Below, piece by piece: positions 54,765-63,927 of a DNA stretch of 64,000 nucleotides (positions within the stretch are counted from its first letter, which is position 1; each line of letters starts with the position of its first letter). The DNA comes from Orbicella franksi (lineage: Eukaryota). The translations under genes were made by a program, and so were the position numbers. Under the pieces are notes generated by a model. That model saw nothing but the letters and a program-made list of their open reading frames with translations, was not told the DNA's origin and ran no database searches. The stretch lies in assembly GCA_964199315.1 (NCBI GenBank), contig OZ116707.1:7502001-7566000 (forward strand). Reading direction: 5' to 3'.

Positions 54765-57700
54765 ATGGCGGCAATTCCATGTTCTCTTCGCCTCCATCAA
54801 ATTTGCGGACCGTCGCTTGATCTGAGCAAAGTTTGGTATGCTGTATCAAACGAATGGTTTCATAAACCACGAGAGTTCATCACAAGTGATTCCTTTCCGT
54901 TTTTCAATGCTGATATCGCAGAAGTTCATATTTTTGACCTGTCTGATACAAATGGCGGGATCGTGGATCCATCATGGTTTGGATCTTCCAAAAAGAAAGA
55001 CACAGTTGTTGTCGCCACTCTCTTCGGAATAGTTGGAAGGGCATTGCGAAGAAAGAACCTGGATACCGATGCAATAGTTGCTTCCAAAGAATTTCAAGCC
55101 ATCAGGGATTTATTAAATTCCCTCCAATTTGATTCAGAGATGGCGGCGAGACAGAGTAAGCTTAATATCTCCGCATCGACCCCACAGCCTTTATTCTCAA
55201 CTCCACCAGCGACACCACCTGAAGACACTGTTATTGCCTTTCCAAGTTTTAATCAGCCGATTAAAGATCTGCAGAAGCTCGATCCTTCCATAGGACCGCG
55301 GCTGTTTGTGAGAAACGCTGGAGCTATCACCAAAAGCTGCATAGATTCCTTGAGGGAAGACCAAACCAGTGGGTCGGATATTGGAAAGCTTTTTGGCTAT
55401 GGGCTCTTGTATGGTCCAGATGAAACTCATAAACAGTTCGTAAAAGATGTGTTATCCACTGCATTGTGTACAGTTGCCGAGAAGAAGGGCATCAAAAAAA
55501 CATTTAACACATCACTATGTGATAATTTGACCACCGATTATGTTCAGTCACTGAGAGTCCCCGACTGGATTCAGTTGTATGTAAAGCTGGCAACGAAACT
55601 GCCAAACAGATCTTGGCAAACTCCTGAATTGCCTGAACATCGGCCGCAGCGGGGTAAGTTATAATATAAATTTTTAAAATATATATCAAATTAAAAATCT
55701 GATATTTCTTTTCCATACTGTTCATCGAGAGCTTACATGTAGTTGCATGCATGTCCCCCTCCTCCCCCCCCCCCCTGCTCTGGGACAAATCCGGCTATTC
55801 TAGGTCTACTGCAGTTGCTGTTGCATAATTCATTTCAATCTTAAAGGAAGTGTGTTTGGGACTTCCTCCAGATTTTTGGAAATTTTGTAATTTTGTGGGT
55901 TTTTTTTATAGTAGAGTTTATTTGCTCTACTTCCGAACATTTTCAAGTGTTATAAAACTTCACTTTTTGGTAACACACACTAATGAATGAAATATTTTAA
56001 TCTTTGTTTGAAACAACAAAGTTTATTTTTAGTTGATGTCACATGTTCCAGGGGTGGGATTATTTTGTCAATCTTTCTAGGGATCAGAATATCACATGAA
56101 AAAAAAGTGAAAGTGAAATCTTCTAAAGGCTGCAATCATTACATTCCAGCTGAACTTCCGTGAATGACCAACTCTTGTAAGCAATTGCCTGTAGATGTCT
56201 TAAGGAAGCATTTCCATGATACAAAATATCTTTGTTTAAGTGAAATCACTATATTCAAGACCTCTTGGAAGCATCACCTTTCCTAGTTGATCACCTGACC
56301 TTCCAAATTGTTGCTTTTGAGGTTTGACTGTAAATAATAAATATTTATTTTTTTCCTACATGTTCCACAGAAAGCCATTGACATTGGACTCCTTCTCACA
56401 ACAAATGAAATACGAGCCCAAAAAGATCTTGTGTTTTCAGTAACAAGAAACTTATTTAAAGTGGAACCCCTTGCTGAAGAAGTACGTGGCTATGGTATCA
56501 GCATGAAGATGGCTGTGGTATGGCAGATTCGACAAAGTAGGTTACATCAAACTGCATCAGAGTTTCTTGAATTTAACCTCAAACTTGATGGAAGACCTCT
56601 AGCAGGTATTTGATCTTTACAGTGTATATTATATATCCACTATCTGTCAACATTGTAATATTGTAACAATGATTTAATTATGATTAAGATATGATATCCT
56701 TGAGGGTTTTTCTCTGAAGAAATATTTTGTTCAAATTATATGCATTGTCTATGCATGTCATTGCATATAAATTAAAAAAAAATCAATGGGGAGTTTAAAT
56801 TTAAATGCAAAATCGAGCTAATTGTTGCTGACACAAATCCTAATTTCTTACATAGTTAATCACTGGGGCAATAAAAAATTGGTAAAATAACCATATTATA
56901 TGATTGACATAAGAGGCATGCAAATATGATACTGTGTAACCAACAGTTTTCACATGCTTTCTGTGCAAGCAATGTAAATGGTGTCCATTTTTTGCAGGGC
57001 AGGAGCAAGTTTCCGTTGGGATAGTTCCAATTGATTTAGCTGTCACAACTAGCAAAGGTCTCAGTGGTTCTCAGAGTGCACTAGCTGTTTACCCCATTGC
57101 TGTTGCTAAGTGTGCAGAGAAAAGGTAAGATTCCAGTACTTCTTTAATTTGCAGGTTACTATAGGTTACTAAATCTATGAATTTGTTTTTTGGGGGGGAT
57201 CTAACGAATAAATATAAATTAATGATTTTAATTTTTGTTTGAGTTGAGTTTGTTTAGGAGAGTAATTTATTATAACATTGATTTATGCTGAAAAATTTAG
57301 AGTACTGATTTTAGTACAATCATGTTTATGGCTGTTTTGAGTATGTTTTTGTTTATATGTTTATGATTATACTATTTACGTACATGGATAAGTGATGATT
57401 TTAAAGTAGTCACCATTAGCAGTTTCAAGTAAGCCATGGGAGGGACACTACTGCTCACCAAAAACGTAATGCAAAGCGCAAGCAGTACTAACATTAGACG
57501 GTCAGCTCAGTTGAAAATATTATGTTACTAACATCCAATGCTAATTTATTTAGTTAATGCCCAGCATTAAGAAGGCATCTACACCCCATTATACTGGAAT
57601 GTACAGCAACTGGGAAAGTGACATCAGTGTGGTACAACTGTGCACTCTAACTTATTAATAAGAGCTAATATCAGTAGCTCTTCATTTTAGGAGTGAAGTT

Positions 57701-60700
57701 AAGAAGCTGATCATCAGACTAAATGCTGAAAAGAAAGCTCTCAAAGAAGAAGGCACAACTGTTGATGGAAAACATTACAAAGTTAAATTTAAAGGTTCAG
57801 TTTCAGAAAAATTAATGCAATTCTGCTTCGCTTGACTGCCATTACATGTAATATTACTCTGTGATTGTTTTAAAAAGAGCCACTAGCGTCAACCATTTTT
57901 AAAATACATGATTGTAGTAAAACCTCAAGATTTATTTTCCAAATCTACCAGGATGTTAGCTGGTTATATAGTCACTGTATTAAAATGTTTTTGCATTTTG
58001 AGTTCTGATTGGTTTGAATGTGTTGTATGACTGTACTTTCTCTTGTGCATATTTGTCCAGAGTGATTACTTAGTTGTGGTTTATTTGCACTGGACTGAAA
58101 CTGCCCTCATTATTTGAAATTGCTATTGTTATTTAAGCTTATTTTACTTTGTTTTTTTTCTCTCTTAGTTACACTTGACTTGAAGGCATTGTATATGCTT
58201 CTTGTTAAGGTTGATGACGAAAGCTTTGTATTAGCTGGGCGTGGAAGTTACATTGAATTCTGTTTTTTATGCCATGCTTTAAGGGTATTTTGAAATATCT
58301 TTTGTTACTTTATAAAGTTATGATATTAATTAATCACATTGCAGAGTGATGTTCTTAGACACACATGTATCAAATCAATATATGTGTGTGAAAAAATGAG
58401 TAATAATATATGTCACATGTATACAAAACTTTTAGTGATGAATCGCTGCCTGACTTGACATTCATTCATGCAGCATGACTGGTCTTGTATAATCTCAATG
58501 GCCATCAGTTAGTATACTGTAGTCAGAGTGGCTGAACTGCAATGAAGATGTCTGAGTTAGTTAGGAGCCAGGCTTTTAAATAACTATAATTATAGAATGA
58601 AAAATGTCTCATTTTTATTGAAGGCTTGTAAAGAACAATGGGGTGGATCTTTTGACGAAGTTTGCCTGACTTGTCTTCTATCCAAGGCCAATATTGGAAA
58701 GTGTATAACATTCAATCAGAGCATTATCTGGCAACAATGAGGTGTTGTTAACTTGAGAAATACTTAATTCAGTCAATTGTAGTCGTTTTCTGGGTGCATT
58801 ATTGCTCTGGTAGGAGAAATTTGGCAGGCACCTAGCCAAATGTGATCAGTTAATCTGGCCACCATGAAGAAAGCATGAGCACAAGGTCAGAATCCAAAGT
58901 ATGGCACTGAACCTGGCTTGGGGGATACCTGTTCTGAATACACCAGCCTTAATGTATTTGTGATCAGGGGTTTATCTTTAATTTCAGGTGGACAGGAATT
59001 CATGATGATCTCATGTTTTTGTTAGATGAGGTGTTCAGCAATGTCTGTCTGTGTGCTCTTCACAGTGAGATGCGAAATACTGAGCAACTGCTTGGTTCAC
59101 TTGGTTTGTTCGCATACAGATGCAATTCACTGACTGAATGTAATAAAGCTATTGGTCAATGTGGTCCTGAGATGTCTAGGGGGAAAGAAAGGATTACAGT
59201 GAAGCTCCATAAAGGCCAGCAGACTGCTGTTGATAAGAATAACATCTCTGTTGCATCATTTTCTGGTAATATTATTATCTTTGAGTAAAATGCCTATAAT
59301 CATATGAACCACTTAAATTCTGTTGTCTGATTGATTGATTGATTAATAATAATTATTATTAAATAATATTTAAGTTAATGCCCCTAATATCTTTTAAGTA
59401 ATACGTTGTCCTATTACCATGACTTTAATGTATAAGTTACTTTGAATGTAGATCAATGGCAGCAATTTTGAAACAGTCATTTCCATGGTGCATAATTAAG
59501 AACTGGACATCAGTATGTTCATTGAGATATACTGCATCAGTAAAACTCTTCAACAACCTTAACAAGTTAAAGTCCAACAGTATATTTCATTTAAAACATT
59601 GTTGAATAAAAATGGAACTTTTTATCTTATTCTAATAGGAAACACAGAGAAATAATTTGGATAATACTGATGAGATCATAAGAAAATCTTTACCAACTGA
59701 CAGAGTGATATCCTATTACAAAGAGGTGAATGGAGCTTCTAAAGATGTAGTCCTTGGCTACGTCACATTCATGAATGCAGTGAAAATTGTAAGTTGTATG
59801 TTATCTCCAGATATAGATAGCTTGCACTCCAGTTATTCTGATAAACCAAATTCAAGATTTTACTGTCAATAATTTTGCCATTATATATATGTCTGAATTT
59901 ATGAAAACTGTGTTAAAGACTTTGTACCAAAATAGCGGGTATGTTTTTTGGAAAATCGGTTAGAAAATGTACATAAATATGGCCATGTCGTACCGAGAGT
60001 GCTATCTACCTCGTGTACTCTTAACAGAGTCCATACCATGCCTATACAAGCCTTTGAAGTCGCTGCAAATGAGTCGAATGAGCCAAACAAAGCTAAATTA
60101 GAGCTTACATTGATCATTTGGTTCGCCACGGCACTAATTTAGACAGGCTCAACCTCTGCGATTTCACCTAAATGACCTCACTATGTCTTTACTGTGGATT
60201 AAATTAACCAGTCACGCTAACAAGAGCATGGTAAGCAGTGGAATCGGTTATTTACCTCTATATTTCAGCCAAAAAGTAGCCATTACGTGACATTTCATCT
60301 CAATATCTGACCGGATTCGCAAAAACATAGCCATAGAATTTGACTTGTCACTGATAATCTTGCTACAATTCTGTCCCAGAGCTAGCTTTCCATGAGGCTT
60401 ATTGTAGCTCAAATAGCAGCAAATAACTCTCCTGTATGCCTTTTGAGGCCAGGAAGACTAAATTCACCGTCTTTTCGTTGAATCATGAATTGTACAATTT
60501 AATTAAGAGTGCTTTTAACATGAAATTGGAGTCTAAATCAACATGAACGTACAGATATCAAAACCGTGGCGGAGAGCCAATCTATTGCTTTCTAAAGGCC
60601 TGCATCGTCCTAAATGGACTGAATAAGAGCTTCCTACATCGAGAATCGATTGAAATTCAGACAAACTAGGCCATAGTTAGCAGTAAGCCAACACTCAACA

Positions 60701-63700: not shown

Positions 63701-63927
63701 ACAATTTCAGTGTAAACTTTGGGGCTTTCTCTTACGCCACTTGTTTGGCACCACTCTTGGCACTGGAGATTATGGCCACCTAACCATTGACCACTCTGCC
63801 ATGTTGTTACGCCTGCATTGTTCTTTTGCGAAGTACTCCAACCAAGGTTTTGAAGCATCACACAAAGTACACAGAGCTCTCTACTCAAGAGCAACGTGTC
63901 ATGATCAAGGAGGAGTCACACAGTCCT
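54765..63927 (+). pseudogene. RAG1/Transib-like DDE transposase gene of at least 12 exons, mildly degenerate, continuing past the window
   Basis: Phase-compatible GT-AG exons: 54765-55653, 56371-56605, 56998-57124, 57691-57794, 58169-58284, about 58624-58702, 58988-59265, 59639-59788, 61840-61924, 62209-62426, 63045-63137 and 63711-63927. Motifs in order: KLDGRP (56587), TLDLKAL (58177), FCFLCH, CALHSEMR (59052), DYGHLTIDH and SNQGFEASHK (63852). Confidence 0.75.

Follow-up and report, generated by a model that had tools for sequence, protein, structure and literature searches.

A spliced and transcribed transposase gene in the stony coral Orbicella franksi, probably the 5′ portion of an anthozoan DNA transposon

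This study concerns a 64,000-nucleotide stretch of the Orbicella franksi genome (contig OZ116707.1, positions 7,502,001 to 7,566,000), hereafter called the window, in whose positions all coordinates are given unless a locus is named. It holds a gene of 12 exons on the plus strand at 54765-63927 that encodes an intron-rich DDE transposase, and we consider it probable that a cut-and-paste DNA transposon of stony corals and sea anemones has one of its copies here, of which the window shows the 5′ end and 12 exons, the first of the gene. Every intron is GT-AG, the splice phases are compatible and the exons sum to 2589 nt. An earlier note, made from the letters of the window alone, had proposed 12 exons with compatible phases, and its start and end (54765 and 63927) are identical to ours. 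Exon borders were taken from RNA evidence, including contigs of two coral metatranscriptomes (X15 and X16) that are 95–99% alike to the window and were mapped over 54001-60000, and were then checked against the genomic letters. Stop-free segments of the plus strand pair exon by exon with a locus in another coral assembly (L003) at 53–80% amino acid identity, with no match in the DNA between exons. A full-length homologue, the uncharacterised 910-aa protein P0195 of Oculina patagonica, aligns to every exon of the window, and the alignment ends at its residue 875. The left terminus of the element and the exons are as follows, L007 being a transcript of a relative that is described below.

54489..54517, plus strand: 5′ terminal inverted repeat core, CATGACGAGATCCATGAGAGTCTGAAATT; the outer end may lie ~10 bp further left
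54765-55653, plus strand: exon 1, N-terminal domain of 296 aa without a Pfam family; two letters lost near 55621; RNA joint 55652/56370
56371-56605, plus strand: exon 2, first catalytic Asp motif KLDGRP at 56581-56598, kept in all subfamilies; tblastn matches to L003 and P0195; RNA joints on both sides
56998-57124, plus strand: exon 3, homology to L003 and P0195, RNA joints
57691-57794, plus strand: exon 4, homology to L003 and P0195, RNA joints
58169-58284, plus strand: exon 5, second Asp motif TLDLKAL at 58171-58191 and CxxC as CFLC at 58261-58272; the D and C..C are invariant (alignment A7); RNA joints
58624-58700, plus strand: exon 6, second Cys cluster CLTC at 58663-58674, and KANIG; normal AG acceptor, no frameshift
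58988-59265, plus strand: exon 7, site of the RDDL motif, and CALHSEMR at 59052-59075; RNA joints
59639-59788, plus strand: exon 8, two letters lost near 59650, where the frame changes
61840-61924, plus strand: exon 9, into whose first letters the RNA loose end at 59788 runs (X15, X16); homology to L003 and L007
62209-62426, plus strand: exon 10, helical insert; in-frame TAA at 62349-62351; L003 and L007 have this exon open
63045-63137, plus strand: exon 11, homology to P0195; junctions from L007 and L003
63711-63927, plus strand: exon 12, HxxxxH as YGHLTIDH at 63771-63794 and catalytic Glu motif NQGFEASHK at 63840-63866; the gene runs past the window

Introns 1-7 are skipped at the model borders by joints in the metatranscriptome contigs from this locus, and at intron 8 the RNA loose end continues as the first letters of exon 9. 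Introns 9-11 are supported through L007, a 3-kb contig from the Joint Genome Institute that represents a partly spliced transcript of the relative locus L003, to which it is 97–98% identical, and that shows GT-AG junctions for the homologues of introns 5-11. Support for the junctions thus comes from RNA joints at this locus and from the comparison of L007 with L003, the two kinds of evidence (paralogues or RNA-Seq) on which the earlier note had made its model depend. The gene is real, spliced and transcribed. The direct RNA proof of exon structure at this locus is new here, as is the finding that other samples are in frame where the assembly is broken. The genomic copy L003 has a run of seven T at ~13684-13690 where the transcript L007 has six (~1013-1018), with the frame broken at CxxC in the genomic copy only; a polymorphism or an error in the homopolymer is the likely cause.

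When spliced, the assembled copy reads in one frame from 54765 to ~55622, in a second frame of 340 codons over 55585-59652, and in a third frame to the TAA at 62349-62351 and then on to 63927. It carries three lesions, the loss of two letters near 55621, the loss of two near 59650 and this stop. The earlier note had counted four, and the frameshift that it placed near 58650 does not exist, the acceptor of exon 6 being normal and the frame unbroken across the 340 codons. At 55620 both the RNA contigs and a DNA run from another sample (X1) have two extra letters and are in frame, and near 59650 the RNA contigs again have two extra letters and are in frame. It follows that the two-letter losses either arose in the assembly or are confined to the individual that was assembled. 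Since the contigs of other coral samples, 95–99% alike, are in frame at both of these sites, an unbroken version of the gene probably exists in the population.

The motif series D, D, CxxC, LH, HxxxxH and E, which the earlier note had listed in this order, was located in full within the spliced exons. In P0195 the residues are D376, D459, C487/C490, C542-A-L-H545, H826/H831 and E851, and the series is kept across subfamilies from stony corals to sea anemones, with CFLC and H-x4-H conserved in all of them. The second His lies 20 residues before the Glu, and the second D lies 392 aa before it. In mouse RAG1 the catalytic residues are D600, D708 and E962 and the zinc ligands C727/C730 and H937/H942, with the same spacing of 20 from H942 to E962 (PMC4914335). 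The DDE triad and the C2/H2 zinc site of RAG1 thus appear in the same order in the coral family, a correspondence at the level of motifs only. The RDDL motif is otherwise invariant, and this copy reads GIHDDL there (58995-59012), with His for Arg. Two further parts of the protein were described correctly from the outset, an N-terminal exon of about 300 aa that is novel in matching no Pfam family, and a long helical insert between LH and HxxxxH, which is real.

The fold of P0195 was predicted with AlphaFold twice, once for the whole protein and once for residues 296-910 with a deeper alignment. For the full model the top 40 Foldseek matches were all RAG1 or HzTransib, and VIA re-scoring gave Z of 7.6-9.4. 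For the core model the top 48 were all RAG1 or HzTransib, after which E jumps from 0.027 to 0.3. An exhaustive VIA-align comparison of the core model with 48,161 representative chains returned only six with Z ≥ 8, namely amphioxus BbRAGL (10.2), HzTransib (9.4) and mouse/zebrafish RAG1 (9.3, 8.9, 8.3 and 8.1), followed by a chain at 6.2. The likeness to Transib, RAG1 and amphioxus RAGL (6PQN, 4WWX, 6B40) covers the core fold from the pre-RNase H region to the Glu at Z 8-10, and on RAG1 the aligned span runs from residue ~510 to 955-957. Gapless extension of the 4WWX alignment places E851 on E962, and extension from 6OEM falls two residues short. Among solved structures, the predicted fold was shown to match RAG1, RAGL and Transib only; the comparison with RAG1 and Transib structures that had been suggested for this protein therefore returned these three as the best and only clear matches. 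A best match to P or hAT, the outcome that the earlier note had named as fatal to its proposal, did not occur.

It is accordingly very improbable that the motifs arose by chance or that the enzyme is a member of hAT, P or some other DDE superfamily. Hermes (hAT) does appear weakly for the full model, at Foldseek ranks 41-47 (E 0.4-1.3), but it lies outside the top 50 for the core model, and chance would have to explain motifs shared by every subfamily, in corals and anemones alike. The gene model P0202 of a relative contains a P-element RNase H domain (residues 97-239). However, this domain precedes the part that aligns to the family (from ~residue 440), and the model therefore looks chimeric; its front part was rejected.

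Part of the evidence for a mobile element lies at its left end. Similarity of the window to two loci with unrelated flanks, L001 and L005, starts at the same point, 54489, and the 29-bp repeat found there has inverted counterparts in L001 (13218..13189) and L005 (14083..14055), at which the similarity stops. The repeat core, CATGACGAGATYCATGAGRSTCTGAAATT, starts with CA, its inverted copy ends with TG, and ~10 weakly similar bases lie outside the core. Transib ends and recombination signal sequences (RSSs) carry a CAC heptamer. The coral core begins CATGACG instead, in agreement with the earlier observation that the window shows no CAC-type RSS-like terminus.

L001 is the closest relative in hand, with 82–91% nucleotide identity in exons. 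Its repeats enclose 10.1 kb, in which are found transposase exons 1-4, the tail of an Ulp1 domain and a protein kinase gene. The window, which ends at 64000, contains no RAG2-like gene, as had been noted before, and the repeat-bounded L001 has Ulp1 and the kinase instead. In four further family members (P0198, P0199, L011 and L018) the transposase is spliced in frame to, or followed by, an Ulp1-type domain, and in the anemone gene model P0051 (Actinostola) the kinase is joined in place of Ulp1. Ulp1 (P0198, Exaiptasia) or the kinase (P0051) follows the transposase core in frame after a similar short linker, LTRQQ or LTRRQ, and L001 holds remnants of both Ulp1 and kinase, at 6336-6627 and 11114-11842. 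This alternation looks like module exchange at one junction. At the Exaiptasia locus L078 neither flanking inverted repeats nor a kinase could be found within 23 kb. Plant Mutator-like (MULE) and CACTA elements carry an Ulp1/C48 protease. So do Crypton elements (PMC3212892), and Ginger is likewise reported to be an Ulp1/C48-carrying transposon (PMC2836005). The coral family differs from these Ulp1-carrying transposons in that its protease joins a RAG1-fold transposase by in-frame splicing and a kinase gene is also carried.

For placing the enzyme, it is important to consider how widely its motifs are shared. The CMCT clade comprises EnSpm/CACTA, Mirage, Chapaev, Transib and others, mostly with 5′-CA..TG-3′ termini and 2-5 bp duplications, and its marks are C(2)C and H(3-4)H motifs together with those termini (PMC12730594). 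In one classification Chapaev falls within a wide Transib superfamily, and Chapaev has been recorded from the genomes of the starlet sea anemone and lancelet (PMC4411706). The earlier note had taken the motif series as that of RAG1 and Transib. Because the series marks the whole CMCT clade (PMC12730594), a specific kinship with RAG1/Transib is unproven; and since the structural matches include no CMCT members other than RAG1, RAGL and Transib, the fold places the enzyme in the clade without showing closeness to RAG1. We infer membership of the broad CMCT clade (EnSpm, Mirage, Chapaev, Transib) for the enzyme, and this copy is a partial example of an anthozoan CMCT-type element. The CA start of the repeat core and the TG end of its inverted copy may correspond to the termini of CMC/CMCT elements, with the ~10 weakly similar bases lying outside them; the 2-5 bp duplication of the clade is not readable in L001 and L005. 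Unlike EnSpm/CACTA, the coral element has no CACTA-type terminus. It may also differ from Chapaev, which has an N-terminal Chapa zinc-finger domain (PMC4411706): the conserved columns of its N-terminal 300 aa (alignment A2) contain no Cys cluster that could be such a zinc finger.

A narrower placement, truly inside the Transib/RAGL lineage or as its sister, and nearer to RAG1 than EnSpm, Mirage and Chapaev are, would suit the finding that all clear structural matches are RAG1, BbRAGL and HzTransib, and that the H(4)H motif and the position of E at +20 are identical in the family and in RAG1 (PMC4914335), with LH in the same order. We regard this placement as unlikely. The fold cannot split Transib from CMC when no other CMCT members were matched, and the coral family has no detectable sequence similarity to Transib, RAG1 or RAGL. 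Pfam, whose library includes the RAG1 model PF12940, gave no match for the single exons, for P0195 or for any of 39 family sequences, even at E ≤ 10. Searches of PDB sequences (phmmer with the exons and the full protein, and a family profile) were likewise without a match, RAG1 and Transib included. The distance from the second D to E, 392 aa in the coral family with its long helical hairpins, far exceeds the 206-214 aa of Transib and the 253 of RAG1 (PMC1131882). The family also has its own 300-aa N-terminal domain and at least 12 exons; its terminal repeat has no CAC heptamer/nonamer and starts CATGACG, no 5-bp duplication was seen, and its passengers are Ulp1 and a kinase with no RAG2-like partner. 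Of the earlier proposal of a divergent RAG1/Transib-related lineage, an intron-rich DDE transposase with the corresponding fold and motifs therefore stands, whereas the name was too narrow for a family without a sequence link and with other termini and other passengers.

The family ranges over Scleractinia and Actiniaria. A word search with the exon-1 product found 48 homologues, and an exon-1 profile found 449 representative clusters, nearly all of them fragments the size of an open reading frame (ORF) that stop just past the conserved first donor. Besides P0195, which confirms the earlier expectation that intact relatives may exist, homologues were found in Acropora muricata, Exaiptasia diaphana and Actinostola sp., and a scan of metagenomes and metatranscriptomes added 70 loci, many of them spliced transcripts, which represent four or more subfamilies. 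One assembly holds at least two diverged paralogues. In Oculina the gene is annotated by NCBI with isoforms; no genomic record for P0195 was found. In comparisons with transcripts from relatives, the ratio of nonsynonymous to synonymous substitution rates lies at 0.06-0.08 for the core and at 0.18-0.35 for the insert, which shows that the lineage has, to judge from substitution patterns, evolved under purifying selection. Three gene models (P0178, P0200 and P0203) were set aside as chimeric. Together with P0202, these anemone and coral models join pieces of the transposase to P-element RNase H (P0202), dCMP deaminase (P0200), Fic (P0203) or other Pfam-less sequence (P0178), and all four are probably chimeric predictions across nested elements.

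Copy number bears on whether the locus is a transposon at all. Word depth in the DNA run X1 is ~10-14 within the element and 8-11 in the flank, and since the two are equal the element is approximately single-copy at ≥95% identity. Its first ~500 bp, in the interval 54401-55000, reach ~4x the depth of the rest, which fits extra truncated or deleted copies that keep the 5′ end only, such as L005 and L006. A gene that the host had domesticated from such a transposase, immobile at this locus, would also be expected to show single-copy depth, and it would be in line with a transcript that is spliced and expressed in several coral metatranscriptomes and in frame at the two sites tested, with strong purifying selection and with the annotated isoforms of Oculina. 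Domestication nevertheless seems to us improbable. The left inverted repeat is still present at 54489, the nearest relatives, flanked by unrelated DNA, have internal deletions and end in the same repeats, and there are the diverged paralogues within one assembly. Moreover, the copy in the assembly is broken, and purifying selection between lineages is expected for active elements too. A low-copy transposon is therefore favored, on the grounds of the retained left repeat, the deleted repeat-bounded relatives elsewhere and the paralogues.

In the transposon reading that we prefer, the transposase would bind the inverted repeats, and D376, D459 and E851 (Oculina numbering) would make up the RNase H-type active site responsible for cutting. 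The active site may be braced by a zinc site of C487/C490 and H826/H831, as RAG1 is by C727/C730 and H937/H942. Several points weigh against this reading. The window stops before the 3′ half of the element, so that any right repeat, Ulp1 and kinase of its own would lie beyond the span analysed, and the position of the terminus is uncertain by ~10 bp. No target-site duplication, of 5 bp or more generally of 2-5 bp, was readable at the ends of L001 and L005, a weak test in copies that are old. Single-copy depth combined with good expression would fit a host gene too. On the protein side, the Pfam and PDB searches gave no sequence link to a named superfamily, and the structural models are mediocre, with a mean predicted local distance difference test (pLDDT) score of 67 for both and a predicted template modelling score of 0.47 (full) and 0.57 (core). 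The regions of the zinc Cys and the Glu have pLDDT < 50 and the catalytic geometry is not captured by the models; TM-scores are low (0.15-0.29) and root-mean-square deviations large.

A bolder combination of these elements can also be considered, in which wild coral populations carry an unbroken, single-copy and well-expressed version at this locus that acts as an active element or a host-captured recombinase and is a deep sister of Transib plus RAG1 and not of EnSpm/Chapaev. We hold out little expectation for it. If true, animals would possess RAG1-type enzymes of a second, independent lineage whose own partners are a kinase and a protease of the SUMO type.

Vertebrate antigen-receptor recombination has its root in RAG1-type enzymes, and new lineages with this fold map how far the architecture has spread and which partners it has recruited. 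To this the anthozoan family adds a Pfam-less N-terminal domain, a very long helical insert and two passengers, Ulp1 and a kinase. Since in-frame, correctly spliced transcripts exist, the family can be tested at the bench. The weight of the finding is limited by a kinship that holds at the level of the broad clade only, by the fact that Ulp1-carrying transposons are already known, and by a copy that is partial and slightly broken.

The remaining features of this part of the window do not belong to the gene.

59884..61522, strand not assigned: nested non-autonomous element of 1.64 kb in intron 8, with 38-bp terminal inverted repeats that are 95% complementary
51674-53282 and 53829-54530, minus strand: pieces of a RecQ-type helicase (DEAD, Helicase_C, weak RecQ_Zn_bind) and an adjoining 233-aa ORF, directly upstream

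The nested element reaches a word depth of ~1500 in the DNA run X1. Contigs of other samples have loose ends at 59889 that run straight into the letters after 61522, and because they skip 59889-61522 the insertion looks polymorphic, i.e., recent. An Rfam search over 53500-64000 gave no match. The 233-aa minus-strand ORF upstream has no Pfam family, and its first 14 codons lie within the terminal repeat region of the element. Contigs of RNA libraries at lower depth cross the left end of the element from the flank into exon 1 (54039-54881), and represent either read-through transcription or a transcript of this minus-strand ORF.

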